DNA of 64,000 bases from Caecitellus pseudoparvulus (GCA_965644315.1 CBFFRQ010000045.1:1-64000), one strand, 5' to 3'. Positions 31,027-47,688 are shown, counted from the stretch's first letter. Notes: generated from the letters alone by a model not told the origin. Program-made: numbers and translations.

Positions 31027-31800
31027 GGCACGGGAAGGCGTGGTGACGAGGCGTTTCACACAAATCCGCTGCAGTGCTTTGAAGGCACAGTGCAAGCAGG
31101 CGCTTGCAGAGCAAACTCAGTCGAGGAAAGAAGCACCACGTCGGCAGGCAGTCACATTCGATGTTGCTGGGCGTCTGGAATGGCGACGATGACCGTGGAA
31201 GGATGGAACCGCCGGCGGCACTCTCACAACGTTTCGTTGCATCATTCACGGGACTCATTTATGTCCTGACTTCTAGCTCCAAGCCTGCATTCGCTCCACA
31301 GTACTTTCAGAAAGCCCTCCACGCATTGTCACTACTCCATTGCTGACCAGCTGGTTGCGTTGTGGTTCCCGTAAGTGTCTCACCTCCGGCCAGTCACTCT
31401 TGTTTGCGCCGTTTGGCTGGCTGTGCCTTTCCCCTCTGCTGTGTCGAAACGCCCAGACGTGGCCTGGGATGGCTGCCAGCACAACCCAGCTGGATGTGTT
31501 GGCGAGAAGGTGGCAGTTTGTGTTAGCATGTCTGTGCCTTCAGAGCCATGCTGTGCGGTAGGGTGGAGCAACCACACCTGAGCCGCCACTGGCTCAGCTG
31601 CGGAATTTGCCATCATCCGCAGCCCACTCTGGTGCCCTCTTTGAGGGAGCTACACGGCTCCACGGAGCCCACCCTTCCCATCAAGTGCTTCAGTCTCCCC
31701 CGCATTCCCACTGTGTCTATGCGTGTCTCTTGTGTGCACCTGGCCCCACTGCTGACCTCGCCCTGCATTCGCAGACACACACAGCAGCACCCCGACAGCC

Positions 31801-32508: not shown

Positions 32509-32760
32509 ATTTGCGTTGCACTCTTCACAGCAATGCATTGATTGGAGGTTCACGTGGCTCCTTCCCAGGCAGGGATGCCGATGAGGTGAGACGCAGGGCG
32601 AGGCCGGTCCAGGACGTGTGGGAGCGCTGTGACTGAGCGTCAGCATTGTAGCCTGGGCAGCTGGGGCATTGAGACAGCGGTGACACAAAACTACTCCCAT
32701 CATCAGTACACAGCGTGCATCAGAATGCAGTTGCTCAGGCGAACCTGTGCAGTGTCGCCC

Positions 32761-32779
32761 GTGCTGCTGTGCAGGCGAG
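32761..32779 (+). promoter_or_regulatory. Conserved upstream motif GTGCTGCTGTGCAGGCGAG shared by all four ankyrin-module genes (other copies: 34606-34624 +, 45512-45530 -, 47246-47264 -)
   Basis: Identical 19-mer ending about 45 nt before each ATG while neighbouring sequence diverges; function is inferred. Confidence 0.5.
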
Positions 32780-32824
32780 TTTGTAGGCGAGTGCAGGAGG
32801 TGCGGAAACTGAATTCCCCACGCC

Positions 32825-33982
32825 ATGGCTGATGGCAGCGACAGTGAGTCAGTGGTGGGGCGATGGAAGGCTGCATGTGAATCTGAGCAGGCAGATGTAC
32901 TGCTGGATTTATTGGAAGAGTGTGGTGGTGGCCCCCGGCAGGGAGGATTGACAAGCGACGAGACAACGGCTGGCTTTATCGTTGCTTGCCGGCTCGGGCA
33001 CCTTGAATTGCTTGACAAGATGCTGGCATTGGAGGGGGGCGTCGCTGTGGATGTACACGCAGAAGTTGAGGGTGAGGCTGAGGCTGAGGCAAGCTTTCTC
33101 GTTGCCTGTGCGAACGGGCACTTGGGCGTGGTGCGAAAGCTCTTGTCGCTGACAGGTGCTCGCGAGGTGAATGTTCATGTGGGAGTTGAGGGTAGCCCTG
33201 AGCTTGGGTTCATTGTTGCCTGTTTCAATGGTCACATTGATGTGGTGCGCGAGCTGCTTGAATTGAAGGGACATCGTGAGGTGGATGTGCATGCAGTTGA
33301 TGGCGATGGGCCTGAGGCCGGCTTCCGACTTGCCTGTACGTATGGGCACCTGAATGTGGTGCGCGAGCTGCTTGAATTGAAGGGACATCGTGAGGTGGAT
33401 GTGCATGCAGTTGATGGCGATGGGCCTGAGGCCGGCTTCCGACTTGCCTGTACGTATGGGCACCTGAATGTGGTGCGCGAGCTGCTTGAATTGAGGGGGC
33501 ACCGTGAAGTGGACGTGCATGCTGGGCCAGAGGGCAATCCTGAGGCTGGCTTCCGACTTGCCTGTCGCATTGGACATATAGAAATTGTGCGTGAGCTTCT
33601 GGCGTTGACCGGACATCGTGAGGTGGATGTGCATGCGGGGGACGTTGATGGGCCTGAGGCTGGCTTCCGACTTGCCTGTTGGAATGGGCATGTGGAAATT
33701 GTGCGGGAGTTGCTGGCGCTGAGCGGGCTTCGTGAAGTGGATGTTCATGCTGGAGATCGACGTGGATCCGAGGCTGGCTTTCGCCTTGCGTGCAAGGAGG
33801 GACACTTTTGTGTGCTGCGAGAGCTGTTGGGACTCACTGGCCATCGAGCGATCCCTCTGCAAACTCGACTTGCCGCTGGAAAGGCAGCTGTGCAGCAGGG
33901 CAAAGATGCCGTGTGGGCTGGCACCAGCACTCGGCAAGGCCGCACGGCCGTGCTACTGCTGCGGGCTTCAGTTGGAGCATAG
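32825..33982 (+). CDS. Variable ankyrin-like module protein A (385 aa; N-cap + 6 modules + terminal module/C-cap)
   Basis: 38-aa repeats EAGFRLACxxGHxxVVRELLxLxGxREVDVHAxxxxxP; intronless. Confidence 0.9.
   Translation: MADGSDSESVVGRWKAACESEQADVLLDLLEECGGGPRQGGLTSDETTAGFIVACRLGHLELLDKMLALEGGVAVDVHAEVEGEAEAEASFLVACANGHLGVVRKLLSLTGAREVNVHVGVEGSPELGFIVACFNGHIDVVRELLELKGHREVDVHAVDGDGPEAGFRLACTYGHLNVVRELLELKGHREVDVHAVDGDGPEAGFRLACTYGHLNVVRELLELRGHREVDVHAGPEGNPEAGFRLACRIGHIEIVRELLALTGHREVDVHAGDVDGPEAGFRLACWNGHVEIVRELLALSGLREVDVHAGDRRGSEAGFRLACKEGHFCVLRELLGLTGHRAIPLQTRLAAGKAAVQQGKDAVWAGTSTRQGRTAVLLLRASVGA
33240..33494 (+). repeat. Perfect 114-bp tandem duplication of one module (about 2.2 copies)
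   Basis: 33241-33354 is identical to 33355-33468. Confidence 0.92.
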
Positions 33983-34669
33983 GCACATCTCTGGCTTCGG
34001 GCTGACTTGGTGTGGGTTCCTCCAGCAGGCAAGGCTACACACTCTGAGTGGGTGGCAGTGCAGGTTTGCGACGCATGCCGCACCGTGAAAGCGGCCACCA
34101 CGATGGCCAGGTTAGGGTTGACCACAGTGCACGAGCCAGACAGTGCACCTGAGCCTTGCGGATTGAGAAGCTACGGCTTGAGCGCAACCCTGGGAAGAAG
34201 GACGTCTGCACCGACACCGTACCAAGGCCGTGGCGTGGTGGCGGGTGTGGTGACAGGCCAGGCGGGCCTCTTGATCATCCACATGACTTCCATGTAGCAG
34301 CTGGCGGACAGTGTATAGCAAGACCTGGGCGGCAGTAGTGCGGCGGCTGTGGACAGTGTGCTTGGTGGGCGTGGTGGACGTTGTGGAGGTGTCAAGCGAG
34401 TGGGGAGTTAGGACGAGGTCGGTCCGGCACGCTTTGGAAGCGCAGTGGTGGAGTTCGTTTGCACGAGCAGAGGTGTGAGCCAGGCAGCAATGCAGACCAG
34501 GTAAGTGGAGCATTACCAAGGCTGCGTCAAAAGCAGCGAGCGACTAAAAAACATGCGTTGGAGATCAGAGTGTCGATCCTCCGATGACACTGTGCTGTGC
34601 CGCCCGTGCTGCTGTGCAGGCGAGGGTGTTGGCGTGAGCGGGAAGTGCGGAAACTGAATTCCCCACGCC

Positions 34670-35641
34670 ATGGCTGATGGCAGCGACAGTCAGTCAGTGT
34701 TGGTGCAATGGAAGGCTGCATGCGACGGTGAACAAGCTGATGTGCTGTTAAGCGTGCTGCAGGAGTGTGGTGGTGGTGCTGATGCGGGTCTGGAAGGACT
34801 GTCAAGGGAAGATACGACCGCTGGCTTCATGGTTGCTTGTAAAACGGGACACATTGGACTGCTGCGTGAGCTGCTGGCGCTGGCAGGGGATCTTGCAGTG
34901 GATGTGCACGAGGGTCCGGAGGACTGTCCTGAGGCAGGGTTTCGGTTCGCTTGCCAGAATGGACACGTGGATGTGGTGCGCGAGCTGTTGTCATTGACGG
35001 GTGATCGAGCCGTGGATGTGCACGCAGGGCTTGGGGGCGATCCTGAGTATGGCTTCCGACTTGCCTGTGTGAATGGACATGTGGACGTGGTGCGCGAGCT
35101 GCTCAAGCTGGGCGATGAACGGGAAGTGGACGTGCATGCTCCCTTCTGGGGCGAACCTGAGGCTGGCTTCCTCGGTGCCTGCGAGAAGGGGCACGTGGAT
35201 GTTCTGCGAGAGCTGCTGGCGTTGAGCGGGCATCGAGAAGTTAATGTGCATGTAGGGTCTGGTGGCACGCCAGAGGCTGGCTTCCTGGCTGCCTGTCAGT
35301 TTGGACACACTGATGTGGTTCGAGAGCTGTTGGCCCTGAGCGGGCACCGTGAAGTAGACGTCCACGTACAAGACTGGGGCGTTCCAGAAATTTGCTTTCG
35401 ACGAGCCTTTCAGAATGGGCATGCAGGTGTGCTGCGTGAGCTGCTGGGCCTCACTGGCCATCGAGCCACCCCCATGCAGACACGCCTTGAGGTAGGGGAA
35501 GCAGTTGTGCAACCTGCCAAGGATGCTGTGTGGCACGGCACCAGCACAAGACAAGGCAGACGCACGATGCTGCTGCTGCGGACTTCTCGAACGGCCAAGC
35601 TGCTCGGTCTGCTTTCTGTGCACTCCTCGGGCCGCCAATAG
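34670..35641 (+). CDS. Variable ankyrin-like module protein B (323 aa; 4 modules + terminal module)
   Basis: Same MADGS N-cap, 38-aa modules and KDAVWHGTSTRQGR C-cap. Confidence 0.9.
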   Translation: MADGSDSQSVLVQWKAACDGEQADVLLSVLQECGGGADAGLEGLSREDTTAGFMVACKTGHIGLLRELLALAGDLAVDVHEGPEDCPEAGFRFACQNGHVDVVRELLSLTGDRAVDVHAGLGGDPEYGFRLACVNGHVDVVRELLKLGDEREVDVHAPFWGEPEAGFLGACEKGHVDVLRELLALSGHREVNVHVGSGGTPEAGFLAACQFGHTDVVRELLALSGHREVDVHVQDWGVPEICFRRAFQNGHAGVLRELLGLTGHRATPMQTRLEVGEAVVQPAKDAVWHGTSTRQGRRTMLLLRTSRTAKLLGLLSVHSSGRQ

Positions 35642-35666
35642 CACTGGATCCCGCAATACACAGCTG

Positions 35667-38265
35667 ATTTCTCAATGCAAGGGCTACCATGGGAGCCATT
35701 GGTGTCCAGGGTATCCGACGTATTATTGCCTCCTCCATGTAGGAAGGTCCATGAATTAGGGTGTGCTTCTTCACCCATGGCCGGATGGGGATTCTCAAAC
35801 CACTCTTCGTGGGAATGCAGTGTAGTTCAGGCTCCGCACCCCTGCGATATGTTCACGTTGGCCAAGACGCTTGTGGCCTTTGCTTGAGTCGGTGGCAATG
35901 AGACAAGAAGTACATACTCTCCGTGCATTGTGGTGAGAGTTGAAAGGCGCTCAAGTTCAATCGACGAACTTGCTCGAGCTTGACTCTGACCCAACTTGCA
36001 TGAAAAGTGGGGGCCAGTAGAAAGAGAAGCTTCGATCAATTGAAACAAGTGAAGAAGAAGCAAAAAGAAGGAAAGGCGACGAAAACGCAGCTGCATGCTC
36101 CCCAATGAAACGTATTCCGTCCGTCTTGAAATATGGCCCTTGTACAAAGGCGCCACAAGGGATGAAAGTTGATGATTGTGTCGAGACAAATGTGGGCTTC
36201 ATGCCAAGAGGAGGAAACCCTTGCATGGAAACGCACTGCAAAAGTGGTGTTGCTTGGACGCGCTGCAGAGGACATACGTCGCGCAAAGTCTCGAAAATCT
36301 GTGCACGGCATGGATCCAAAAATTGTTGCTCACAATGACAGCTGAAAGTATTCCACAGTCCAGCACAGGCTTCAAAGAAGCACCATTCAAGTTCATGCAT
36401 GGCATGATCTTGACATATCGATAAAGTTCTGGTTCAACAAAAGAGGACTGCAAGGTAATTATCCGTGTCTCGAATTTCTCTCATCAAAGCTGTTCCGCAT
36501 GAAAGCCCATTGAGCTACAACATTGCCATGCGCAACTCATCAACAAGAATACAGATGCGACCTCTCGACACAAATGAACGACTCCAATAGACATTTATCT
36601 TGAATGTATGTTCAGGGCAGATCTTCCAAGCAAACTCTGATGAGGCCTTACTCGATTGGTCTTCAAAGTGAGTGTAAGCAGCAATTTCCTTCACCACATT
36701 TTCCCTCTGAAATGACGAGAATCCGCTTGCAGAAGTCATTCTTGTCGTTCCATTCTCCTTCATCCGCAATGCGTACCAGCATAAGTTCTCGTTTATTTAA
36801 ACACTTCAAGCGGTCGTGCTTGATGGAGTGAGATGAAATGTTCATGCGGCACAGTGTAGAACAAAGGAAGAACTGCATCACATTGCAGCAACGCACAAAA
36901 CGTGACTGCTCATGTGCTACCCCACAGCCATCCATAAAGCCTCTTCTGAATCGGATGTGCAAGGAAGAGTGATTTCTTTCACGCAAAGACTTCCTTCCTC
37001 ATTTTCAGAGAATCTGGCTCATGAGAACTCAAGGATCTTCTGCCTCAAGCACCACAAGAATAACTCCATACTTTCATTCCTCAAGCAAGCTGCCTTGCGT
37101 TCCTCTCAGTGTTGCATCTCTATTTACATGAAGAGGTTCCCACATGATTATGCGGGGGAAGGAATTGTCATCGTTTCGGCTCTGGTGCAAAAGTGGCAGG
37201 TGATGGATGGTTTGTACTTCAAAACGTAGTGTAGATTTTTGATCGGTTTTGAGACGAGATTTGTTTCTGCCCATCTTTGCTTGAGAACGAGTCCGAATTC
37301 TTTGCAGCAGGTGCCCAACAAACTGAAGCACTGTCAGGCAGATGTGGACGCTGCTGGCTGCTCGTAGTCAAGTGATGCCGACTTCTTTGATGAAACTTGT
37401 TATCTCTTCGTGTCATCTTCGCAGTCAACGCTCAAAGGTGAACTGGACCGGTTAGGACTATGCGCCGAGTTTCCACTGTTTGACCATTTCCTTGAATTTC
37501 TGTACAAGCTCAAACATAAACGCAAAATCTGCATTGTAATTTCTGAGCAAGCGTTGAAGACAATGGTTTGTTCATCGAGGCATGCACCGTGTTCTTTCAA
37601 GGAGAGGAGTGAGTGTTTTCGCCATCTGATTCCACCATCACAGTATTTGCGCGTTCGATTTCTCATGCACTGGATGGTATCTCGAATGACTTTGCTTTCA
37701 CTTCCGAGGCATAAGATACTGCAGTTGGTTTTATGTCATCAGATCGTGTGACTTGGGTTCTTGTACAAGACTCAGACTTCATACTTGCATTTGAGTCATT
37801 CTGCTTGGGAGAAGACTTGAGGTGTCGAGCGGGTAATGTGATGCAAAGGAGTCAATTAGGCCGTGCCCTTTGCTCTTACATTGCGCAGATCGCGTTTGTA
37901 AAGTTCTGTTAGAAAAGTGCCGTTTTCCTGGGACTTGCAGCCCATGGTTTTCTACGAGCGAGGTTTGCCCGAGGTGCATTCTGGGTGATTGTTGAGCGCA
38001 AAGCGGGCCAAAAGCTTTCCTCACGCCAAGGTCCTGTATTGGCAGAATTGCCACCCTCTTTCGCAGAGGCCACGAGTCCAACTTACCAGTTGAAGACCCA
38101 GCTCAGGCGTGAAGCCATAGCAACAGTGCATTTCTGCAAGAAGGGTCACGCATAGCCGAACTCTGCAAGAGGTGGGGAGAACGGCCTCTCTGGTGAACCC
38201 GCCTTTCCAGTAGAATCAACACTTTGAACGTCATGAGAGAACACACTTGCCCAGTTGTTGGTACC
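35667..38265. other. Low-GC island without an intact ORF, possibly a decayed gene or element
   Basis: Three 60-nt lines counted by hand gave 40-47% GC, well below the flanks. One + frame (36912-37751) reads protein-like through two TAG stops. Confidence 0.5.
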
Positions 38266-39341
38266 ACAGCTGTGTTGCAGGAGGCCAGTGCTTGCGGCAA
38301 CTCCAGGAGTGGACAGGACGTATCCCGGGTGTCTAGGCTGGTCGAGCACCCCATAGCAGCAGCATGGCCTTGCGACCCTGTCGAGTGCCTGTGCCGTGCC
38401 AGACGGCATCTCTGGCTGCCTGCACAGCAACCCCTCCGGCCTCAAGGCGTGCCTGCAGCGGAATGGCTCGATGACCAGTTAGGCCCAGCAGCTCACGCAC
38501 AACATCCAAGTGCCCGTTGCGGCAGGCAAGCCAGAAACCAGCCTCAGGCATGCCCTGGTATGCAGCATGTACGTCAACCTCACGATGCCCGCTCAGCGCC
38601 AAAAGGTCAAGCACAACTGCAACATGACCAAACTGACACGCAAGTCTGAACCCGTGCTCTTGATCTCCCCTACTTGCCGCATGCACGTCAACCTCACGAG
38701 CACCAGTCAAAGCCAGCAGTTCGCGCACGACATCTGCATGCCCTGCCTTGCATGCGAGCCGGAAGCCAGCCTCTGGCTCACCATCGGACCCGGCATGTAC
38801 ATCCACGGCTCGATCACCCGTCAGAGCCAGAAGCTCGCGCACCACACCCAGATGGCCATTCTCACAGGCGAGCTGAAAACCAGCCTCAGAGTCGCTCTCG
38901 AATCCAGCATGCACATCCACGGCTCGATCACCCGTCAGAGCCAGAAGCTCACGCACCACCTCCAGATGGCCACTCTCGCATGCGGCCTGGAAGCCGTACA
39001 CGGGCTCACCCTCAACCCCAACACACACGTCTACCTCACGATCGCCAGTCAAGGCCAGCAGCTCGCGCAGCACACCCACATGCCCATTCTCACAGGCAAG
39101 CTGAAAACCAGCCTCTGGCATGCCCCCACGCGCAGCATGCACATCCACAGCTCGGGCGCCTTTCAGATTCAACAGATCTCGCACCACACCCACATGACCA
39201 TTTGCACAGGCAAGTCGGAAGCCAGCCCCAGGCCCATCCTGATCTCCAGTGTGCGCATCCACCGTCAGCTCCCCCTCCAACGCCAACAGCGCACGTAGCA
39301 GCCCAACATGCCCCGTCTTGCACGCGACCACAAAGCCAGCC

Positions 39342-39508
39342 GTTCTGCTGGACGCTCGAGCGGGTGGTGTGGTGTTTTGAATGCATTGTTGCCAATGCAT
39401 CCTTGCCGGACCGCCCGACACCACGGTGACCCCGCGCTCGGCACCGGCGTGCCGCAGTCGGCGGGGTCCCGTACCCGGTGGCCCCAGGGTGTCAAGGCGT
39501 CCATCCCA
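39342..39508 (-). repeat. Split direct repeat B2 (167 bp, including the GTT core)
   Basis: Matches 39693-39859. Confidence 0.95.
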
Positions 39509-39526
39509 AGGAGGGAAGAAGGAAAA

Positions 39527-39695
39527 AAAAGAAAAAGGAAGCGGGCGAAGTCAGGGAGGAAGGTTAGAGGGGGCATCGACGTGAGGGTCTGAGGATGGGA
39601 GGCGAGGTGAAGAGTGCGCCCCAGGCGACACTGCCCCGCCTCCCTCCCTGCAGAACCCCCGCTTGCCACCCCCTGCGGGGGAGGCAACAGCAGTT
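39527..39695 (-). repeat. Split direct repeat A2 (169 bp)
   Basis: Matches 45151-45319. Confidence 0.95.
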
Positions 39696-39859
39696 CTGCT
39701 GGACGCTCGAGCGGGTGGTGTGGTGTTTTGAATGCATTGTTGCCAATGCATCCTTGCCGGACCGCCCGACACCACGGTGACCCCGCGCTCGGCACCGGCG
39801 TGCCGCAGTCGGCGGGGTCCCGTACCCGGTGGCCCCAGGGTGTCAAGGCGTCCATCCCA
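39693..39859 (-). repeat. Split direct repeat B1 (167 bp)
   Basis: Matches 39342-39508; shares GTT 39693-39695 with A2. Confidence 0.95.
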
Positions 39860-41054
39860 CATCATTCACCCTTGCACCCAGCCCCCCTCGGGGGGGCCAC
39901 TGGCCGTGGTTGGCCATCGGTCGGCGCAGGGGAGGGCGATCTTCGCCTCTCCTCTCCTTGGCCGTGCGGTGCCGGACGAAGGGGTGGGGCTCAGGGACCC
40001 GGTCCTCTGAGTACCCCTCCCCCTGTGTTATGCCCCTCGCCCGCGAAGCAGCCTCGCTGCGGCCCGGATCTTGAGTAGGCAGCCTGTTGCCCAGCATGGC
40101 GTCCCGAAGCAGACTGTGTCCTACCCCGGACCGACCCCAGTAGCAGAGGCTAGGAACGTTCGAGGTCGGGGCCCACCCTCCCTGTTGGTGGATGGCCGCC
40201 GCTGGGAGCCCTTGCTGGACCCAGAACCTGTGGCCGCCTGGCCGCAGGCCTCCGAGGCCGACTCCGGTGTGCATCTTCAGCGCTGCGGTTATGTCCGCCC
40301 CGTCCTGGGACGATAGCACCCGACCTTTTCCTCGGGTTGCCTCTGCCCTGAGGTGGTCGAACGCGCGCGCCCACTCTGGGGACCTGGGGACGGACCATTG
40401 CCTGTCCCGGTGGTGATGTGTCTTGTCCCCATGCCTGCCCGTCACCACCCATACGCCGTCACGTCTTGTAAAGGTGAGGTCGGCCCATTCCAGGTGCAGC
40501 AGCTCGCCAGCGCGCATCATGGCCCAGAACCCAATCAGCAGGCAGGCTTGTAGCTTTGGGCGTCCGCCCAGAGCGTCCACCGTTTTACGAAGCTTGCTCA
40601 TAGGCACGTGTTCACGGTGCTGCACAGGCGGGCTCGGTTTCATCCGGGCCAGCGCCTTCGTAAGCTTGGTGAGCGTCATGCCCACTCTGCTCAGGTTCTC
40701 GACTGGGATGCACCATGAGTTCGCGGCGGCCAGCAGGGCCTTGAGCTTGCCGCCGGCCGACCGTGACGAGCAGGCTCCCGTCGTCACTTGGTGTCGGGCC
40801 CACTCGATAACCTTGCTCGCCCGCAACGGGCCCGGCGCCCTCGGTCCTCTATGTTCCCCGCGTGTACAGAAGCGCAGGAAGGACGCTAGGAGCCTGGCGT
40901 ACTTCTGTTGCGTCCGTGGTGCTAAGCTGTGCCGAATACAGCTTCCGACGCCATTTAGCGGGATGGCCCGAACGAGCCGCGCTAGTTGCTCTTCCTTGAC
41001 GACGATCCACCCTGCGTGAGGAGGAGGGCTGCCTGTTCGGCTGTCGTGACGCAG
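39843..41054 (-). CDS. Tyrosine recombinase of the retroelement (open frame with no upstream AUG)
   Basis: SLAPRTQQKY..F.RFC N-terminal domain, GFWAMMRAGELLHL, DKT, GGLRPGG, QGGW...LCY; the frame is open from 41054. Confidence 0.88.
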   Translation of the reverse strand: MRHDSRTGSPPPHAGWIVVKEEQLARLVRAIPLNGVGSCIRHSLAPRTQQKYARLLASFLRFCTRGEHRGPRAPGPLRASKVIEWARHQVTTGACSSRSAGGKLKALLAAANSWCIPVENLSRVGMTLTKLTKALARMKPSPPVQHREHVPMSKLRKTVDALGGRPKLQACLLIGFWAMMRAGELLHLEWADLTFTRRDGVWVVTGRHGDKTHHHRDRQWSVPRSPEWARAFDHLRAEATRGKGRVLSSQDGADITAALKMHTGVGLGGLRPGGHRFWVQQGLPAAAIHQQGGWAPTSNVPSLCYWGRSGVGHSLLRDAMLGNRLPTQDPGRSEAASRARGITQGEGYSEDRVPEPHPFVRHRTAKERRGEDRPPLRRPMANHGQWPPRGGLGARVNDVGWTP

Positions 41055-43159
41055 TCAACGAGGTCGCCTGGGCCGCTCGCGCGCGCGTCTGGGTTAAGGA
41101 CGACCCACTCAGTGGTTTGGTCGGTCGGCGATGTCTCTGCTTCCAGATTCAGGTCTACCATAGCGGCGGGAGGGGATCCCAGCCCGGAGGGATCCACGGT
41201 CTCCGGGTGAGAGAGGCGGTCCGCCTGCCAATTCAACCACCGCCTCTCCCACCGAGCGACGAGGCGAATCCGCAGGCGCCTCTGCGCTAGGGCGAGGCAA
41301 CGACAAAACTCAGTCATCGTTTCCGAACGGAGACTATAGCCGCGCTGGTGGATGGCCGCCGCGGCCCGTGAATCCACCACTGACTCCAGAAGAACCGGTG
41401 TACCGGGGCGCAGGCGATCCCGCACCATGCCGGCCGCCACGACCTGCCAGAACAGAGCCGCTACCTCCCAGGTCGTGGAGAGGCCGGAGGTACGCAGCGT
41501 TCCCGGAGCGGAGCCGGCGACGCGCCGCGTCCAGGCCCAAGCCGTGGCCCTGGTGCCACCGGCCGAGCGGTGCACGGTAAGAAACCCTCCCATGCCCCCG
41601 TCGCCTGCCGCGTCTGTCGCTCCGAACAGGGTAAGGCGGGAGTCGGTCGCGATAGGGACGGCGTCCCGAAGCAGGCGCGGGGCGTGGGGGAACTGCAGTT
41701 GTTGTGCGAACCATTCGAGGGCCGCCAGGGCCGAGCGGGGGATGTTCAGGGGTCGTGACCAGCTCGTAAAGCGAAAGGCCGGCTCCCCCATAGCACGGTA
41801 GAGGGGGGCGAGCCGCGCCCGACCCTCTGTCATCAGTTCCGCGGGGCGACGAAGCTGCGAGGTGAGGGCTGCGAAAGCGCGCTTCCGGAGCCCCCGAGTG
41901 TCGCTGTGCAGGCGCTCGACCACCAGCTCCAGTGCCACTGCGAGGAAGACTCGCTTGTGTTCCGGGAACCGGACCGCGACCCCCGCGGGCTGCGCCGAGA
42001 GGTGAAAGCCCAAGTAGTCAACCTCAGACGCCGGCCCCTGTAGCTTGGGCGCGCTTAGCCCCAGCCCCAGCAGGTGGAAACAATCCTTTACACCCTGCAG
42101 CACCTCGGCAGCCCGGTCTCGTGGGCTCGCCACCAGCAGGTCATCCATGTAGACCATGACCGCCGCCGAAGGGAAACGGGCCCGCAGAGTCTGTGCCAGC
42201 AGACCGGAGACCAAGCAGAAGACGAAGGGAGCCGCGGCCCACCCGAACGGGACGCGGCGCAACTCAAGAGGAGAAGTCCCGTCCCCGACCATGGTAAAGC
42301 GCCAGGCCGCGCGGGGGGCCACTGGGATGGTGGTGAACCCGTCCTTCACGTCTGCCACGATAAGCTGTTTGCCGCCCCCGACGCTGCACAACCACTCGGC
42401 CAGCGTCGGGTACACAAAGGGGATGCTGGCGGTGACGGCATTGACCGCAGCCAGGTCGAACACGACCCGGTCCTTCCGGGCGCATAGCGAGGAGGGCGGC
42501 TGAGCAGACTTGGCCCCGGTGACGAAGTCGACTGCCTCGCGGGGACACGACTCAGCCCAACGCCTCAGGCGGTCGGGGCAGTCGGGCTCCGGGTTGAGGG
42601 ACCACTTGGAGACCACGAACGCGGAAGCTACTGGAACCCCTTGGCGTCTCCTGGCGCGCATGTCCGCCGCGTCGAGAGGGACCGCCACCTCATCGCGCAA
42701 CAACTGGGCGAAGCGATCCGCCAACGCCCGACGCTCCCGAGCCAGCACGCTGTAGGGCCTCTCCACTGAAAGCCGCCGGGGGGGGGGTGCTACCATGAGG
42801 TCTCCGGGATCCACGCCCTCCGTGGACACCCAGACGATGACCCGGGCGGCCGGGCATCGCTGCAGCTGGGCTGCTACCCGGGAATCCCGCCCGCACACAG
42901 GGCACAACGTGCAGTGCGCCTGCCAGCACCCGACCGGGTCCAGAAGGCCGACCCGCCGTGGACGCGCTGCTGCCGCCAGCAGCTGTTCGAAAAGCCGCTG
43001 CGGGCGGAGCGAGGTCCCCCGTCCACAGGCCCGTATGACAGCCTCTAAGACGAAGGCCATCGCCAGGTGGTTGTCTGCCCGGGGGGCTGCGCTCTTCCAG
43101 AGATCGGGAGGGGTCTCCGGCACTGGCCAGCGGCAACGAACCCCCCGGGCGGCGAGTTC
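40982..43159 (-). CDS. Reverse transcriptase/RNase H (DIRS/Ngaro-type)
   Basis: RVVFDL, ADVKDGFTTIPV, VPFGWAAAP, YMDDLL, YLGF; RNase H ATDAAG, WEVAAL, VDS, NWQADRLSH. The frame begins immediately after the gag TAG. Confidence 0.93.
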   Translation of the reverse strand, partial: ELAARGVRCRWPVPETPPDLWKSAAPRADNHLAMAFVLEAVIRACGRGTSLRPQRLFEQLLAAAARPRRVGLLDPVGCWQAHCTLCPVCGRDSRVAAQLQRCPAARVIVWVSTEGVDPGDLMVAPPPRRLSVERPYSVLARERRALADRFAQLLRDEVAVPLDAADMRARRRQGVPVASAFVVSKWSLNPEPDCPDRLRRWAESCPREAVDFVTGAKSAQPPSSLCARKDRVVFDLAAVNAVTASIPFVYPTLAEWLCSVGGGKQLIVADVKDGFTTIPVAPRAAWRFTMVGDGTSPLELRRVPFGWAAAPFVFCLVSGLLAQTLRARFPSAAVMVYMDDLLVASPRDRAAEVLQGVKDCFHLLGLGLSAPKLQGPASEVDYLGFHLSAQPAGVAVRFPEHKRVFLAVALELVVERLHSDTRGLRKRAFAALTSQLRRPAELMTEGRARLAPLYRAMGEPAFRFTSWSRPLNIPRSALAALEWFAQQLQFPHAPRLLRDAVPIATDSRLTLFGATDAAGDGGMGGFLTVHRSAGGTRATAWAWTRRVAGSAPGTLRTSGLSTTWEVAALFWQVVAAGMVRDRLRPGTPVLLESVVDSRAAAAIHQRGYSLRSETMTEFCRCLALAQRRLRIRLVARWERRWLNWQADRLSHPETVDPSGLGSPPAAMVDLNLEAETSPTDQTTEWVVLNPDARASGPGDLVDCVTTAEQAALLLTQGGSSSRKSN

Positions 43160-44530
43160 CTATGCGCGGACACGTTCGAGGAGAAGGCCGAGCTTAGGTT
43201 CGCGCTTCGCGTACTCTCGCGCGAACTCACCGCCTTTGCTCCGCATCTTGGCACGGACGCGTCGGAGGAGAATAGTGAGGGCCTCCTCCTGGCCGCTGGC
43301 CTCCCCACCCCGCACGAGGGCCTGAACCTTCTCGCGTAGGCCTGGACAATCCTCGAGCGCATGTGTAGCGCACCTGGAAGAACAAGCCGTGCACCAAACG
43401 AAAGTGCGCGGGTCGTCGGCACCGAGTGGGGACCCCCTTCCCGGGCCGGCCACGTCGGCCGAGCCTCGGGGGGGCCGGCGCCCGCCCCTGGTGCCCTCGG
43501 CCGGTTGTGCCTCGGACCGGCGAGGGCGGGGAGACGGTGGCGGGGGTGCCGAGTGTGCCGCCGCCCCTTCCACCGCTATTTGGTGCAGCAGAGCAGAACG
43601 AGAGCTGGGGGCGACGGGGAGAAGGAGCGCTGACTCTGTCCTGATGGAGTCGGCCCACATCGCCGCCAAGCGCGCATCCGAGTCGGGGATCCGCGAGGCG
43701 CGCTTGCTACCCGCCATCGCCACCAGGCCCTCCAATGCGATGGAGATCCAAACAATGAGCGAAAGCATCCTTCTCCAACCTCGCGTGTCCGCGAACATGA
43801 GACTGTCCGGGAGCAGCCAGACTGTGTCGAGCCATGCCCGGAGCATGTCCGCGGTGGTGCGACAGTCCAGAATCCTCCCCAGCAAGGACGCTAAGACGGA
43901 CCGGCCCTTATAGCTGCCCATCATGACGCAGCGCAGCAGGGCGCCGCGTTCACAGCCGGCCCGCAGCACTTCTGTGTCCAGGACGACACGGACGCCACCG
44001 TCCTCCCCCGCCACGAAGTCCGTGACCAGCATGAGCCCTTCGTCCATCGAAATCCCAGACGCGTCCAGGTCCGTCCCGTGTAAGGGGCGCTGTACCCAGT
44101 CTGGAAGCGTAGACAACGCGCGAGCGGGGGGGGCGGGCAGACCTGCGCATAAGAACGCACCGGTATCCATCGGGCCCGACGGCTTGGTCGGGCCGGTCCT
44201 GCAGAAGTCCAACATGCAAGCAGCTATTGGAGCGATTACCGACGCGCCCTGACGCTCCGGGAACACCCGACCCAATGCGGCGAGGAGCTGGCGCAACTCG
44301 TTGTCGTCGTCTCCGGGGTACGCGGCGACCCAGCGCCATGCGCCTAGCCTGAGCAAGACCGAATCCTGAGGGACGTCGGGAAAAGTACTCGCAATGCTGA
44401 GCGCTTCCGCCCCATCCGGCAGACCACCCGCGCCTGCCAGGGGCGGTGGCGCGACTTGGGGCGTGTCTGAGGATGCAGTGCCCCCTCCTCGACACCGGCA
44501 GCCTCCGCGGTCGGCACGGAGGCCGGTTTC
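43160..44530 (-). CDS. Gag-like ORF1b with a Cys/His knuckle
   Basis: Frame open 44530-43160; motif CTACSSRCATHALEDC; gag position within the element. Confidence 0.7.
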   Translation of the reverse strand, partial: ETGLRADRGGCRCRGGGTASSDTPQVAPPPLAGAGGLPDGAEALSIASTFPDVPQDSVLLRLGAWRWVAAYPGDDDNELRQLLAALGRVFPERQGASVIAPIAACMLDFCRTGPTKPSGPMDTGAFLCAGLPAPPARALSTLPDWVQRPLHGTDLDASGISMDEGLMLVTDFVAGEDGGVRVVLDTEVLRAGCERGALLRCVMMGSYKGRSVLASLLGRILDCRTTADMLRAWLDTVWLLPDSLMFADTRGWRRMLSLIVWISIALEGLVAMAGSKRASRIPDSDARLAAMWADSIRTESALLLPVAPSSRSALLHQIAVEGAAAHSAPPPPSPRPRRSEAQPAEGTRGGRRPPRGSADVAGPGRGSPLGADDPRTFVWCTACSSRCATHALEDCPGLREKVQALVRGGEASGQEEALTILLRRVRAKMRSKGGEFAREYAKREPKLGLLLERVRA

Positions 44531-45147
44531 TCAACTTGCACATTGGCCGGTGTGCCAGCTGACTCCCAGCCCCGCCAACCTTCCTCCCCCTCGTTCCAAG
44601 GAAAGAAGGCCGGACGTTTTGCCGCTGGTTCATCCAACCAGCCGCTATCCTTGCAGTGCTGTTCCAGGTCCTCCACAGTTACCTCCGGGGGCAGCTGGCA
44701 CGCCGTCTTCCAGGCGGCCAGCTTCTCGGGGGACCAGGTTCGCCAGCCCCGCTGGGGGTCACAAGCGAACCTGGCACAGGTCCGGACGGCCTGAGCGCGG
44801 TCCACGCCCTCCGGCAAGGTCTCGGGAGGAACCAGGAACAATGCAAGCGCCTCTTCAGGCGAGTGCGGCAGGGGGGCGGCCGAAGGCGCCGGAGCCGGCG
44901 CGCTAGCGCGCCGGCGGCTAGCCGCCCGCTCCACCGCCTCCATGAACCGCTCCTTCCCGTCCTCCCCCCCCAGGCGCCGCAGCCGATAGTGCTTCCCTAC
45001 GGAACGCACATCGGCAAGGAGCGCCGAGGTCTGGACCCAGGTCCGTATGACCTCGACCTCGTACGACGCCACCAGGCCTTTCAGGGACGAGAACCGGAGA
45101 AGGTCCTCGACCCTAGCCAGGGGGGGTAGCGGGGCAGGGGCGGCCAT
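44344..45147 (-). CDS. Gag-like ORF1a
   Basis: ATG in GCCATGG context directly after A1; overlaps ORF1b, which is in the -1 frame. Confidence 0.68.
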   Translation of the reverse strand: MAAPAPLPPLARVEDLLRFSSLKGLVASYEVEVIRTWVQTSALLADVRSVGKHYRLRRLGGEDGKERFMEAVERAASRRRASAPAPAPSAAPLPHSPEEALALFLVPPETLPEGVDRAQAVRTCARFACDPQRGWRTWSPEKLAAWKTACQLPPEVTVEDLEQHCKDSGWLDEPAAKRPAFFPWNEGEEGWRGWESAGTPANVQVEKPASVPTAEAAGVEEGALHPQTRPKSRHRPWQARVVCRMGRKRSALRVLFPTSLRIRSCSG

Positions 45148-45150
45148 GGC

Positions 45151-45319
45151 AAAAGAAAAAGGAAGCGGGCGAAGTCAGGGAGGAAGGTTAGAGGGGGCAT
45201 CGACGTGAGGGTCTGAGGATGGGAGGCGAGGTGAAGAGTGCGCCCCAGGCGACACTGCCCCGCCTCCCTCCCTGCAGAACCCCCGCTTGCCACCCCCTGC
45301 GGGGGAGGCAACAGCAGTT
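45151..45319 (-). repeat. Split direct repeat A1 (169 bp, including the GTT core)
   Basis: Matches 39527-39695. Confidence 0.95.
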
Positions 45320-46149
45320 GTCTCATCGCTTGACAATCCTTCCAGACCCGCATCTGTACCACCACCACACCCCTCCAGCATGCTTAGCAGCATGCCTGCA
45401 TCCTCGCCATCACATGCAGCCTTCCATCGACCCACCACCGACTCTCCACTGCTACCATCAGCCATGGCGTGGTGGATGCAGATTCCGCACCTGATTCCCT
45501 CTCGAAACAAACTCGCCTGCACAGCAGCACAGACAGCACCGCGCAGTATTGCGATTGAAAATGCATTCTGATGTAGTCTACAGTCTGCCGATGTCGGCGT
45601 TGATTTTGACGCAACCAAGTAAATGTCACACCTGCCTGGAATCCGATGCTACCCACCCACACAACCTGTTTTTTGCCGGTCTCCACACCCTCACCACCCC
45701 TTGCACGAAGGACCCCAATAGTCTCAGCAATGCTCCCTGCACAATGACCACAGCGCACAGACCCGCCACAGCCTCCTCCACATAAGCCGTCAACCTACCA
45801 CCGCCCAGGTCCTGCTGCAAATCGCCCGTGAGCTGCAGGGTGGGAGCCATGTGTATGACCACACGACTTGCACGGCCCGTCACTTCCCCCACCGCCTTGC
45901 CACGGTCCTACCATGGTGTCTGTGCACACTTCCCACTTTCCAGGGGTGGCGCTCACGCCACAGCCCACAAGTCGTGCAAAACTCAAGTGCATTGACTTGC
46001 TCACCTGCACAGGCCATGCCCGAGTTGACCGTGGTGGCGGCTGGCACAGTGCAGCATGAAGTGCAAACGTGCTTGGCCCCTCAGTGAGAGCTTGGAGCCT
46101 CCACATCTGAAGCCACCAGCGCTGAGCCGGTCTGTTGCCAAAGAAGTGT

Positions 46150-47199
46150 CTAGGCTGCGAAGGAAGCCCGCAGCATCAACATCGCCACACGACCCCGACG
46201 AGTGCTGGTGCCGTGCCAGACAGCATCTTTGGCAGGCTGCACAGCCACTTCCCCTGCCTCAAAGCGCTCTTGCCGTGGGACAGCTCGATGGCCTGTGAGG
46301 CCCAGCAGCTCGCGCACCACATCTACGTGGCCATTCTCACAGGCAAGTCTGAAGCCGTACTCAGGCTCACCCTCAGGCCCAGCGTGCACGTCCACCTCAC
46401 GATGCCCAGTCAGAGCCAGCAGCTCACGTACCACCTTCGCATGCCCATTCTCACAGGCAAATTGGAACCCAGCCTCTGGCGTGCCCTCGAAACCCGTATG
46501 CACGTCCACCTCACGGTGGCCGGCCAAATTCAGCAGCTCGCGAACCACATCTGCATGCCCGTTCTCACAGGCAAACTGGAAGCCATACTCAGGATAGCCA
46601 TCAAATCCAGCATGCACGTCCACCTCACGATCGCCTGTCAGAGCCAGCAGCTCGCGAACCACACCAAGGTGCCCATTCGCGCACGCGTATCGGAAGCCAG
46701 CCTCAGGCTCCCCTTCGGGTCCTGCGTGCACATCGACTTCACGATGCCCAGTCAGAGCCAGGAGCTCTCGAACAACGCCAAGTTGACCAAACTGGCAAGC
46801 CCATTGAAAGCCAACATCTGGCCCGTCCCAATCTCGATTCCCCGCATGCACATCAACTTCACGATGCCCACTCAAAGCCAGCAGCTCGCGCACCGCACCC
46901 AAATGGCCATTCTGACAGGCAAGTCGGAAGCCATACTCGGGATCTCCCGTTGGCCCAGTGTGCGCATCCACCGTCAGCTCCCCCTCCAACGCCAACAGCG
47001 CACGTAGCAGCCCAACATGCCCCGTCTTGCACGCGACCACAAAGCCAGCCGTTGTCTCATCGCTTGACAACCCTTCCAGACCCGCATCCGTACCACCACC
47101 ACACCCCTCCAGCATGCTCAGCAGCACATCTGCATCCTCGCCATCACATGCAGCCTTCCATCGACCCACCATCGACTCTCCACTGCTGCCATCAGCCAT
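46150..47199 (-). CDS. Variable ankyrin-like module protein D (349 aa; 5 modules + terminal module)
   Basis: MADGS start at 47199, same caps and modules; serves as the empty-site reference for the insertion in gene C. Confidence 0.9.
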   Translation of the reverse strand: MADGSSGESMVGRWKAACDGEDADVLLSMLEGCGGGTDAGLEGLSSDETTAGFVVACKTGHVGLLRALLALEGELTVDAHTGPTGDPEYGFRLACQNGHLGAVRELLALSGHREVDVHAGNRDWDGPDVGFQWACQFGQLGVVRELLALTGHREVDVHAGPEGEPEAGFRYACANGHLGVVRELLALTGDREVDVHAGFDGYPEYGFQFACENGHADVVRELLNLAGHREVDVHTGFEGTPEAGFQFACENGHAKVVRELLALTGHREVDVHAGPEGEPEYGFRLACENGHVDVVRELLGLTGHRAVPRQERFEAGEVAVQPAKDAVWHGTSTRRGRVAMLMLRASFAA

Positions 47200-47614
47200 G
47201 GCGTGGTGGGTCCAGTTTCCGCACCTGATTCCCTCTCCAAACAAACTCGCCTGCACAGCAGCACAGGCGGCACAGCACAGTTTTACGAAAGCGCCTGCAT
47301 CATTTTATTCAAGGGAAGCCGAAGACTTCAATGTTGCTTTTTGACGCAGCCAGCACAATCGCACACTTGCTTGGTCCGCATCGCTGCCTGGCACGCTCGC
47401 GAGCGTGCAAACGGGCTCCAACACAGTGCTCAAAAGGCGACCTGGACCAACGTTGCCCAGCAACCGATCTAAACCATGACTTTAAAGGCCGCAAGCACGC
47501 ACCAACAGACACCACGGCTCCCCAGCCGTTTCCAGCATCCCATACGCTATCTCGCTCTCCAATTCCACAAGTCACAAACTCATAGACGCAATAAAGTGAG
47601 TGTACTTGTGAAAT

Positions 47615-47687
47615 ACCTTGCTAGCTCAGTTGGTAGAGCGTACGACTCTTAATCGTACGGTCACGGGATCGAGACCCGTGTGAGGTG
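47615..47687 (+). tRNA. tRNA-Lys(CTT)
   Basis: 73-nt cloverleaf: ACCTTGC/GTGAGGT, GCTC/GAGC, TACGA-CTCTTAA-TCGTA, ACGGG-ATCGAGA-CCCGT; anticodon at 47648-47650. Confidence 0.92.
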
Positions 47688-47688
47688 C

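Follow-up and report, generated by a model that had tools for sequence, protein, structure and literature searches.

Known repeat-based repertoires

A fixed scaffold combined with a hypervariable surface is the mark of recognition repertoires such as the LRRs of plants and animals, the VLRs of lampreys, and the repeats of fungal NLRs. The same logic underlies DARPins, which are randomised at positions 2, 3, 5, 13, 14, and 33. Fungal NLRs carry hypervariable ankyrin (ANK), WD, and TPR repeat domains (Dyrka et al. 2014, PMC4986451). In their ANK domains it is the concave face, with its inner helices and loop, that holds the variable positions, and internal repeat identity in this class exceeds 85% (PMC4986451). 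The hypervariable ANK domain of fungal NLRs is the closest known analogue of the family described here, in which at least 150 genes of a marine protist encode small ankyrin-repeat proteins whose scaffold hardly varies.

The two groups are alike in their variable inner-helix and loop positions, in varying repeat number, in repeat exchange within and between members, and in forming a large lineage-specific family. The protist proteins, however, have neither NACHT/NB-ARC nor an N-terminal effector domain, their repeat period is 38 residues, their caps are their own, and their median internal repeat identity is 67%, versus >85% in the fungal class. At concave-face positions, where positive selection is a mark of the fungal class, dN/dS is 0.6–1.2 and nowhere significantly >1 by the counting methods used.

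DARPins resemble the family in having an N-cap, consensus internal modules, a C-cap, a fixed framework, and a few diverse surface positions per module. The protist family is natural, its modules have 38 rather than 33 residues (four of the extra residues follow helix 2 and the fifth is in the hairpin), a conserved unstructured tail stands in for the simple capping repeat, and the modelled solenoid differs in geometry (TM about 0.55). The original prediction equated its variable positions with those randomised in DARPins, which holds in part: positions 8 and 9 align with randomised 13 and 14, and loop positions 33, 34, and 36 match roughly, but positions 1, 4, and 5 correspond to the T, H, and x of TPLHx, fixed in DARPins (T and H at positions 1 and 4). 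Lamprey VLRs are alike only in the capped solenoid, the variable module number, and the variable concave surface; they are LRR proteins, secreted or membrane-anchored, built by somatic assembly of cassettes into an incomplete germline gene, whereas the protist genes encode ANK modules with no signal peptide seen and are complete in the germline. The ANK families of giant viruses, poxviruses, and intracellular bacteria also reach dozens to hundreds of paralogues per genome; the family here differs from these sets in lacking PRANC and F-box and in its cellular neighbours and composition. It likewise differs from ANK-SOCS box and ANK-PRANC adaptors, as Pfam and PDB searches find no SOCS box or F-box-like domain in its tail. 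With the ankyrin repeat superfamily it shares the profile match and the helix-turn-helix-loop solenoid (AF2, Foldseek) but not the 33-residue period with TPLH, and it is a variant within that superfamily.

The four-gene locus

Four paralogous ANK genes, g1 to g4, occupy positions 32825–47199 of the window, the whole 64,000-nt stretch of DNA that was analysed. The features are as follows.

32719–32824: leader of g1, equivalent to that of g2 (repeat families D4 and D5)
32825–33982, plus strand: g1, complete, 385 aa, with N-cap, 8 repeats (6 internal), and C-tail (ORF, Ank_2 E = 2e-28, repeat starts)
34564–34669, plus strand: conserved 5' leader of g2 (repeat families D4 and D5), where a metatranscriptome contig begins exactly
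34670–35641, plus strand: g2, complete, 323 aa, 6 repeats (ORF, Ank_2, repeat starts)
35900–38200: spacer of low GC (46%) separating the convergent gene pairs
38333–39341, minus strand: g3 3' fragment, open, 8 repeats and C-tail (ORF, Ank_2, repeat starts)
39342–45316, minus strand: tyrosine-recombinase (Ngaro/DIRS-like) retrotransposon of 5,975 nt in g3
45317–45465, minus strand: g3 5' fragment, its first 149 nt, with start codon and N-cap to ...DETT
45466–45554: leader of g3 (D4, D5)
46150–47199, minus strand: g4, complete, 349 aa, 7 repeats (ORF, Ank_2); the protein chosen for modelling
47200–47288: leader of g4 (D4, D5)

Pfam Ank_2 matches all four genes at E = 1e-23 to 1e-32 (83–111 bits against a cut-off of 27.3). 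They have in common the N-cap MADGS...WKAAC...TTAGF and the C-tail LLGLTGHRA...DAVW.GT.TR.GR...LLLR, and the repeat spacing of 38 residues, visible in the DNA as a 114-nt period, gives 8, 6, 8, and 7 repeats in total. The internal modules number 6, 4, 6, and 5, so the predicted cap-module-cap paralogues are borne out by reading frames, profile matches, and spacing. Modules of g1–g4 are 60–75% identical in amino acids, and two loops are two residues longer than the rest, one of them GNRDWDGP. The tail of g2 carries an odd 15-aa extension that arose by loss of a stop codon still present in a duplicate on contig C54. The spacer also has a 94% identical copy on C54, where two family genes again converge on it. 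The neighbours of the family genes are of normal cellular kinds (RPS6, a KH-domain protein, a tRNA), the base composition of the window genes matches the surroundings, and none of the four genes is located inside a transposon. The neighbouring RPS6 reaches at most 76–81% identity to marine sequences and 60–69% to sequences from named organisms.

The original prediction described four intronless paralogues; g1, g2, and g4 are complete, and g3 is discontinuous, newly broken by the transposon. Its reading frame is continuous across both pieces once the element is discounted, and its 5' fragment is 94% identical to the g4 N-cap; searches with g3 were run on the two pieces separately. The element agrees with Ngaro/DIRS-like YR retrotransposons in its A1 ... 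B1 A2 B2 repeats, its reverse transcriptase (RVT_1, E = 9e-14), and the absence of a target-site duplication. The split direct repeats, found as families D6 and D7, are A1 45151–45319 = A2 39527–39695 (100%) and B1 39688–39859 = B2 39337–39508 (99%), and comparison of the junctions with the empty site in g4 places the crossover at a shared AAC. The putative recombinase ORF has no Pfam match. Two further full copies (99–100%) lie on C177 and C34.

Module variability and fold

Variation within the module is far from even. Among 490 unique modules collected genome-wide, 20 positions have an entropy below 0.7 bit, and positions 36, 34, 8, 33, 5, 1, and 9 reach 2.6–3.6 bits. Eight hypervariable positions (1, 4, 5, 8, 9, 33, 34, and 36) make up a face of helix 1 and the loop, where the original prediction had placed the variation. 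Modules paired at random have 78% identity over the other 30 positions and 23% over these eight, which are 12% aromatic and 33% charged and yield 469 distinct eight-residue signatures among 505 modules. Since the eight positions differ from module to module, each protein would present its own binding surface. Module identity is the same within genes (0.67) as between genes (0.66), and only two of 67 sampled genes reach 85% between-module identity.

The AF2 model of g4 has a mean pLDDT of 83, with values >90 in the repeats, and predicts two 8-residue helices per module. Foldseek matched it to FEM1B, DARPins, and ankyrin (ankyrin-R) at probability 1.00, the best matches, those to FEM1B (TM about 0.55), reflecting the generic ANK solenoid only. 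The family sequence also aligns to the ANK repeats of NOMPC. The periodicity of variability (1/4–5/8–9) agrees with the modelled helix 1 (positions 38–7). The TPLH motif of canonical ANK repeats is replaced by xGFxx, positions 1 and 4 standing where TPLH has T and H. The scaffold is constrained, and the variability is concentrated on the canonical ANK interaction surface.

Family size and architecture

In the 30.6-Mb genome, N-caps number at least 119 and C-tails at least 150 (the latter from 268 candidates). These counts may be inflated, since small contigs that nearly repeat stretches of C54 and C67 could be alleles. The family search as a whole gave at least 210 matches and 730 candidates. 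Stop codons interrupt only 3 of the 119 N-cap matches, and of 598 spacings between repeats, 561 measure 38 aa. The census of gene structure rests on loci L001–L054, about one third of the family. All 51 capped genes sampled are complete ORFs with their own leader, start, caps, and stop, and contain 4–20 modules each; family members overall range from 4 to ~45 modules, and one 1867-aa ORF has both caps ~1826 aa apart. ANK arrays without family caps are a second gene architecture rather than cassettes, and no cap-less donor cassettes were found among the sampled loci. The family is large, lineage-specific, and germline-encoded, and its products are stand-alone proteins.

Selection and mosaic history

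Selection was estimated by three counting methods. The Nei-Gojobori method was applied to independent pairs of nearest-neighbour modules, sorted by divergence into five bins; changes were counted by SLAC-like parsimony along a 498-module FastTree tree; and paralogues were compared over colinear multi-module blocks. Scaffold dN/dS is ~0.05 (0.03–0.07) against dS of 0.06–0.57, and this contrast identifies selection, not homogenisation, as the source of scaffold conservation. At the hypervariable positions the ratio is 0.6–1.2, roughly 15–20 times the scaffold value and ~1.7 in some blocks, but never significantly >1; the best class gave P = 0.08, and one site among 38 gave P = 0.035, uncorrected. 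In colinear blocks it is 0.64, significantly <1, and g2 and its recent duplicate show 0 changes at 104 variable sites at dS 0.10. These counts give no support for positive selection at the variable positions, nor for its having driven the rapid diversification proposed originally.

Module shuffling among paralogues, the other part of that proposal, found support. Mantel correlation of distance matrices is 0.71 between the two halves of the N-cap and falls along the gene, from 0.66 between N-cap and module 0 to 0.28, 0.09, and 0.00 for module 1, module 2, and the C-tail. Among adjacent module pairs, 42 are colinear, 50 are non-colinear with the same partner gene, and 22 have different partners. 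From the uncorrelated cap histories and the mosaic module order it follows that paralogues swap segments over evolutionary time. The g2 copy on C54 illustrates this: identity is 96.7% over the array and 94.5% over the spacer, versus 84% for the N-cap and C-tail (dS 0.42–0.45). A capped gene and a large gene whose N-terminal domain is different also have modules 85–92% identical in nucleotides.

Conserved tail, accessory domains, and relatives

The conserved C-tail has ~43 residues. Across 31 members, W22, G24, and T25 are invariant, and conservation is 90% or higher at 12 others, including G30, R31, and L36-L37-R38. A tail profile retrieved only 14 representatives among 1.84 billion proteins, each matching at or near the C-terminus. 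There was no Pfam match at E up to 1, SOCS, F-box, and PRANC included, and no PDB match at E up to 10, and the AF2 model of g4 has low confidence here; on these grounds the role of the tail as a ‘handle’ is a guess.

Above the gathering threshold, Pfam found only ANK models in g1–g4, with no NACHT/NB-ARC and no effector domain; NTPase, TIR, death-fold, and other signalling domains had no match. No convincing transmembrane segment was found: the top Kyte-Doolittle 19-residue mean is 1.68, a peak that probably falls in the ANK helices. The expected absence of effector and membrane-spanning parts was confirmed, but a purely cytosolic location was not, as 16 of the 51 sampled members have an NLS-like tail of RKRPR type, and a 24-residue NLS-like extension is present in about one quarter of sampled members. 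N-termini are acidic (median net charge −2 over 30 aa).

A protein from a viral metagenome (P0038) is 44% identical and shares the R.IDVHA motif. The metagenomic relatives P0018, P0001, and P0021 have 33/34-aa modules and a C-terminal domain of roughly 200 aa; the proposal that the C-tail is a shortened form of that domain was dropped (BLASTP E = 0.5, nothing in Pfam). Language-model neighbours are generic viral ANK clusters and are a lead only. A viral origin was rejected when a scan of IMG/VR viral contigs with the family alignment returned no relative.

Possible roles and competing explanations

The family resembles a repertoire of binding proteins passed on by inheritance. We consider it probable that it is a stand-alone ANK family whose variable surfaces form an intracellular repertoire of protein-binding adaptors with a mosaic history. 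This reading builds on an architecture, fold, distribution of variability, selective constraint, mosaic history, and family size that have been demonstrated above. Each protein consists of a two-helix N-cap, 4 to ~45 ANK modules of 38 residues, and the ~43-residue tail, and strong purifying selection holds the scaffold residues. The family has expanded and changed by tandem gene duplication, by gaining or losing complete 114-nt modules, and by recombination or gene conversion between paralogues that remixed caps and module arrays. The proteins would likely act as intracellular adaptors with many specificities, and the tail may be a shared handle for a common partner; the binding, the location, and the partner are all inferred.

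An innate-immune or non-self repertoire, its surfaces diverging through an arms race with, for instance, giant viruses, is unlikely. Here the capped genes would serve as sensors, decoys, or module donors for domain-fused ANK receptors. The very large, clustered, lineage-specific family, the wealth of distinct signatures, the elevated dN/dS of ~1 at variable positions, the segments swapped between paralogues and modules shared with a large domain-fused gene, the distant relatives in viral metagenomes (among them P0038), and the analogy with fungal NLR ANK domains (PMC4986451) would all suit it, but the lack of any site or class significantly >1, the constrained colinear blocks, the unchanged g2 duplicate, the missing signalling domains, and the empty IMG/VR scan speak against it. 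In a more specific form, which we regard as quite unlikely, the capped genes would be a protist intracellular recognition system, a germline library of >150 pre-diversified ANK surfaces, cytosolic and nuclear. Gene conversion would keep reshuffling this library, and its modules would be shared with domain-fused ANK receptor genes, the capped genes acting as sensors or decoys themselves or as donors of specificity. If true, it would parallel, independently of NLRs, the repeat-based immunity of fungi and animals. On present evidence the genes are a well-characterised family with a presumed role in binding rather than a demonstrated immune system.

Adaptors of the ubiquitin-ligase type (ANK-SOCS-box, FEM1, poxvirus ANK-PRANC), in which the array picks the substrate and the tail docks the enzyme, follow the same logic of a variable ANK array and one conserved short C-terminal element. 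The invariant tail residues and the FEM1B structural matches point that way, but those matches are generic, the tail has no SOCS, F-box, or PRANC signature or PDB counterpart, and by eye it does not suit the BC-box pattern; this role is very unlikely. Extremely improbable is a somatic or ongoing programmed rearrangement that assembles genes from module cassettes. The VLR-like layout had suggested it, with the same motifs recurring at different positions, and in contigs of the presumed source DNA run some modules are linked by ‘joints’. These joints span only 20–29 nt on one side and lie within repeats, as is typical of tangled short-read contigs, and the module dS of 0.3–0.6 points to an old germline history. 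Because every sampled gene is already complete in the germline, and cap-less arrays belong to a second architecture, nothing points to VLR-like assembly.

The family is notable for combining, within a protist genome of 30 Mb, at least 150 genes, a 38-residue ANK module, its own caps, and no signalling domain. Protein engineers could draw on it for hundreds of stable natural ANK scaffolds, and it makes the question of whether repeat-based recognition exists in protists outside the NLR framework a tractable one.

Expression

Seawater metatranscriptomes contain low-depth contigs over g1 and g2 (depth 5–11), and the neighbouring RPS6 gene reaches a depth >1000. The contigs of run X1 may include some DNA carry-over; an X2 contig (34564–35204) starts exactly at the g2 leader. 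Together with the position of the genes outside transposons, this argues against unexpressed transposon cargo. A non-genomic 5' end on RPS6 transcripts, considered as a spliced leader, proved to be an upstream exon at 31342 joined across an ordinary 5'-UTR intron.

Genomic setting of the capped ankyrin genes

The window contains four paralogous ankyrin-repeat genes, identified from the ORF listing and Pfam:

32825–33982, + strand: g1, 385 aa, 8 repeats
34670–35641, + strand: g2, 323 aa, 6 repeats
45317–45465 (N-cap) and 38333–39341 (remainder), − strand: g3, in two pieces, 8 repeats
46150–47199, − strand: g4, 349 aa, 7 repeats

All four share an N-terminus (MADGS...WKAAC...TTAGF) and a C-terminus (LLGLTGHRA...DAVW.GT.TR.GR...LLLR), and their repeat starts are spaced 38 residues apart, matched by a 114-nt period in the DNA; two of the loops are longer by two residues. 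The repeat counts agree with the 6, 4, 6 and 5 internal modules of the original prediction, whose observation of a capped ankyrin family is confirmed and whose interpretation is partly supported. A stretch of approximately 100 nt preceding each start codon is conserved among the paralogues (repeat families D4 and D5). Around them lie RPS6, a gene for a KH-domain protein and a tRNA-Lys, all of them ordinary cellular genes, and the possibility that the family is transposable-element cargo is not borne out, as g1–g4 lie outside any mobile element. The tRNA-Lys (CTT) is located just upstream of g4, at 47615–47688. The KH-domain protein (29389–31095) adjoins RPS6 and ends in approximately seven tandem 15-residue units rich in G, K and A (SGGSGPKGGAKAAAA).

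A lineage-specific repertoire

The 30.6-Mb genome (215 contigs) holds many more members. Of 730 candidates in a six-frame search with g4, at least 210 matched; the N-cap gave at least 119 matches, only three of which contain a stop codon, and the C-tail at least 150, with all 150 scored candidates matching out of 268 in all. Some small contigs (C122, positions 1–2304, and C157, C205, C166 and C175) consist almost wholly of family genes, in segments identical or near-identical to contigs C45, C54 and C67; these are haplotigs or very recent duplicates, so the gene counts may be somewhat inflated.

We sampled 54 family loci, which yielded 78 non-redundant module-bearing ORFs and 51 complete genes, each with one N-cap, 4–20 modules and one tail, and encoding 233–839 aa. 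A 1867-aa ORF on contig C54 has ~1826 aa between its N-cap and its tail, corresponding to about 45 modules. Of 598 module spacings, 561 measure 38 aa and 22 measure 34 aa. The tail is lengthened by at least 9 aa in 16 of the 51 complete genes, and in about 13 of these (L003, L005, L008, L009, L014 and L025 among them) the extension is a conserved ~24-residue motif, RARKRPRP...SPAGKA.RSE. We take this extension, present in about a quarter of the capped genes, to resemble a classical nuclear localisation signal. The 15-residue tail extension of g2 (35615–35641) arose because the stop codon kept in its C54 duplicate was lost, so that reading continues to the next stop.

A tail profile found just 14 representatives among 1.84 billion proteins, each matched at or near the C-terminus, so the family defined by the tail is narrow; the metagenomic relatives P0002–P0009 have both caps. 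A second architecture is present in large ORFs at L043 (contig C50, 43000–50000) and L045 (contig C69, 484000–490000), in which the same 38-residue modules follow a non-ankyrin N-terminal region and the protein ends differently (DSVRQQA..FDDL.D.I). Nucleotide identity between its modules and the modules of a capped gene is 85–92%. As judged from these genomic and protein searches, a large lineage-specific repertoire of putative ankyrin binders is real.

Module fold and the variable surface

We modelled g4 with AlphaFold2 using 13 relatives. The mean pLDDT is 83, exceeding 90 in the repeats, and the final ~30 residues have low confidence. The model displays a two-helix N-cap (residues 10–31) and, in each module, 8-residue helices at positions 38–7 and 11–18 followed by a short turn at 22–24. 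Foldseek matched it to FEM1B, DARPins and ankyrin-R at probability 1.00 with a TM-score of only ~0.55, which fits a longer period altering the superhelix. An alignment with NOMPC repeats sets the register: module positions 1–7 (x-G-F-x-x-A-C) correspond to TPLHxAA and positions 8–9 to the 'xx' preceding GH. On our reading of this alignment, the module has four residues more than the 33-residue repeat after helix 2 and one more in the hairpin.

Variability, measured as per-position entropy over 490 unique internal modules, is concentrated in the loop and helix 1, as the original prediction held. Entropy is below 0.7 bit at positions 3, 6, 7, 10, 11, 14–19, 21, 23, 25, 27–31 and 38; it peaks at position 36 (3.64 bits), followed by positions 34, 8, 33, 5, 1 and 9 (2.6–3.2 bits), with position 4 next at 2.05 bits. 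Random module pairs are 23% identical at these eight hypervariable positions and 78% identical at the other thirty, and 505 modules display 469 distinct eight-residue signatures. The spacing 1/4–5/8–9 defines one face of helix 1, and 33–36 fall in the loop. Given the modelled secondary structure and homology, the eight positions are predicted to be the canonical ankyrin interaction surface.

Selection on scaffold and variable positions

We estimated dN/dS by three approaches.

dN/dS by class of module position
Nearest-neighbour module pairs, five divergence bins: scaffold 0.03–0.06; intermediate ~0.4; hypervariable 0.84–1.16; best P = 0.08
Tree-based count, 498 modules: scaffold 0.00–0.21; intermediate 0.29–0.72; ~1.0–1.17 at positions 1, 5, 8 and 36, lower at 4, 9, 33 and 34; none significant after correction
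Colinear multi-module blocks between paralogues: scaffold 0.07; intermediate 0.47; hypervariable 0.64 overall (0 to ~1.7 per block), significantly below 1

Overall, the variable positions evolve 15–20 times faster than the scaffold. The synonymous divergence of modules is high and their identity within genes (0.67) is no higher than between genes (0.66); the scaffold is therefore kept by selection, not homogenisation. At the variable positions, dN/dS significantly above 1 was found in none of the three comparisons.

A recent copy on contig C54 of the stretch that runs from g2 through a low-GC spacer offers a closer view. Identity is 94.5% over the non-coding spacer and 96.7% over the repeat array; at an array dS of ~0.10, no non-synonymous change is found at 104 hypervariable sites, where ~6–10 would be expected under neutrality. 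The variable surface of at least one gene, g2, is being conserved, and the rapid adaptive diversification proposed originally is unproven. The spacer itself (35900–38200, 46% GC) has its ~94% identical copy at positions 408699–411000 of C54, and both lie between convergent family genes. The C54 neighbour on the g3 side resembles g3 no more than family members do on average.

Exchange of segments between paralogues

We correlated distance matrices for successive gene segments of the 51 complete genes. The two halves of the N-cap correlate well (Mantel r 0.71), and the correlation with the N-cap then declines along the gene, from 0.66 at module 0 to 0.28 at module 1, 0.09 at module 2 and 0.00 at the C-tail (P = 0.49). 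The nearest relative by N-cap is also the nearest by tail in only 10 of the 51 genes. Adjacent module pairs in which both members have a match of ≥85% in another gene fall into three groups: 42 pairs are colinear, 50 have both matches in one partner gene but in a different order, and in 22 the two matches come from different genes. The internal modules of g1–g4 are not colinear with one another, and a near-identical stretch of leader, N-cap and first module (89–92%) is common to g3 and g4 only. In the g2–C54 comparison, the N-cap, leader and a 190-nt tail island are just 83–84% identical (dS 0.42–0.45) within a block of 90–97% identity, so the g2 caps and array differ in age.

By these patterns, segment exchange among paralogues over evolutionary time is well supported, in line with the module shuffling predicted. 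The repertoire evolves through gene duplication, through modules gained and lost, and through recombination between paralogues. There is no indication of somatic assembly, and all sampled capped genes are complete. Apparent 'joints' in contigs of the presumed source run were rejected as rearrangements: they extend only 20–29 nt on one side and lie inside repeats.

A retrotransposon within g3

The two pieces of g3 are parted by a 5,975-nt element (39342–45316). It carries a reverse-transcriptase ORF and split direct repeats of the Ngaro/DIRS type (A1...B1-A2-B2), with A1 and A2 100% identical and B1 and B2 99%, and is an intact Ngaro/DIRS-like retrotransposon. Comparison with the intact site in g4 revealed no target-site duplication, and the crossover falls at a shared AAC. 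Two further full copies, on contigs C177 and C34, are 99–100% identical, so the element was recently active and its insertion in g3 is recent. Both g3 pieces are open and would be in frame if the element were discounted; the module architecture ascribed to the third gene stands, and the gene itself is not continuous.

Relation to known repeat-based systems

The nearest described phenomenon is that of the ankyrin, WD and TPR sensor domains of fungal NLRs, which display hypervariable positions on the concave face, variation in repeat number and repeat shuffling (PMC4986451). Unlike these, the present family lacks a NOD or effector domain, has low internal repeat identity, and combines a 38-residue module with caps and a tail that are particular to it; positive selection, moreover, is not demonstrated for it. 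The likeness to DARPins extends to the architecture and to positions 8 and 9; it breaks down at positions 1 and 4. The comparison with lamprey VLRs fails on every defining feature that could be tested, and VLR-like diversification is improbable. An immune function of the repertoire is unproven.

Expression

A 4,101-nt stretch of the window was compared with two seawater runs labelled metatranscriptomic (X1 and X2). Both runs contain RPS6 at a word depth exceeding 1000, and its transcript is polyadenylated at ~32550. Its 5′ end joins an upstream 5′-UTR exon (~31342–31370, joined at 31342), and the ~400-nt intron, ending at 31774, is spliced out in transcript contigs from three runs. Splicing and polyadenylation indicate that X1 and X2 hold mRNA of this organism. 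Contigs of g1 and g2 occur at depth 5–11; in X2 the sole ankyrin-gene contig (34564–35204) begins at the first base of the conserved g2 leader, with no coverage in the intergenic bins. These observations give modest support to low-level transcription of g1 and g2 in nature. RPS6 has at most 81% identity to its closest sequences and ~60–69% to those of named organisms.
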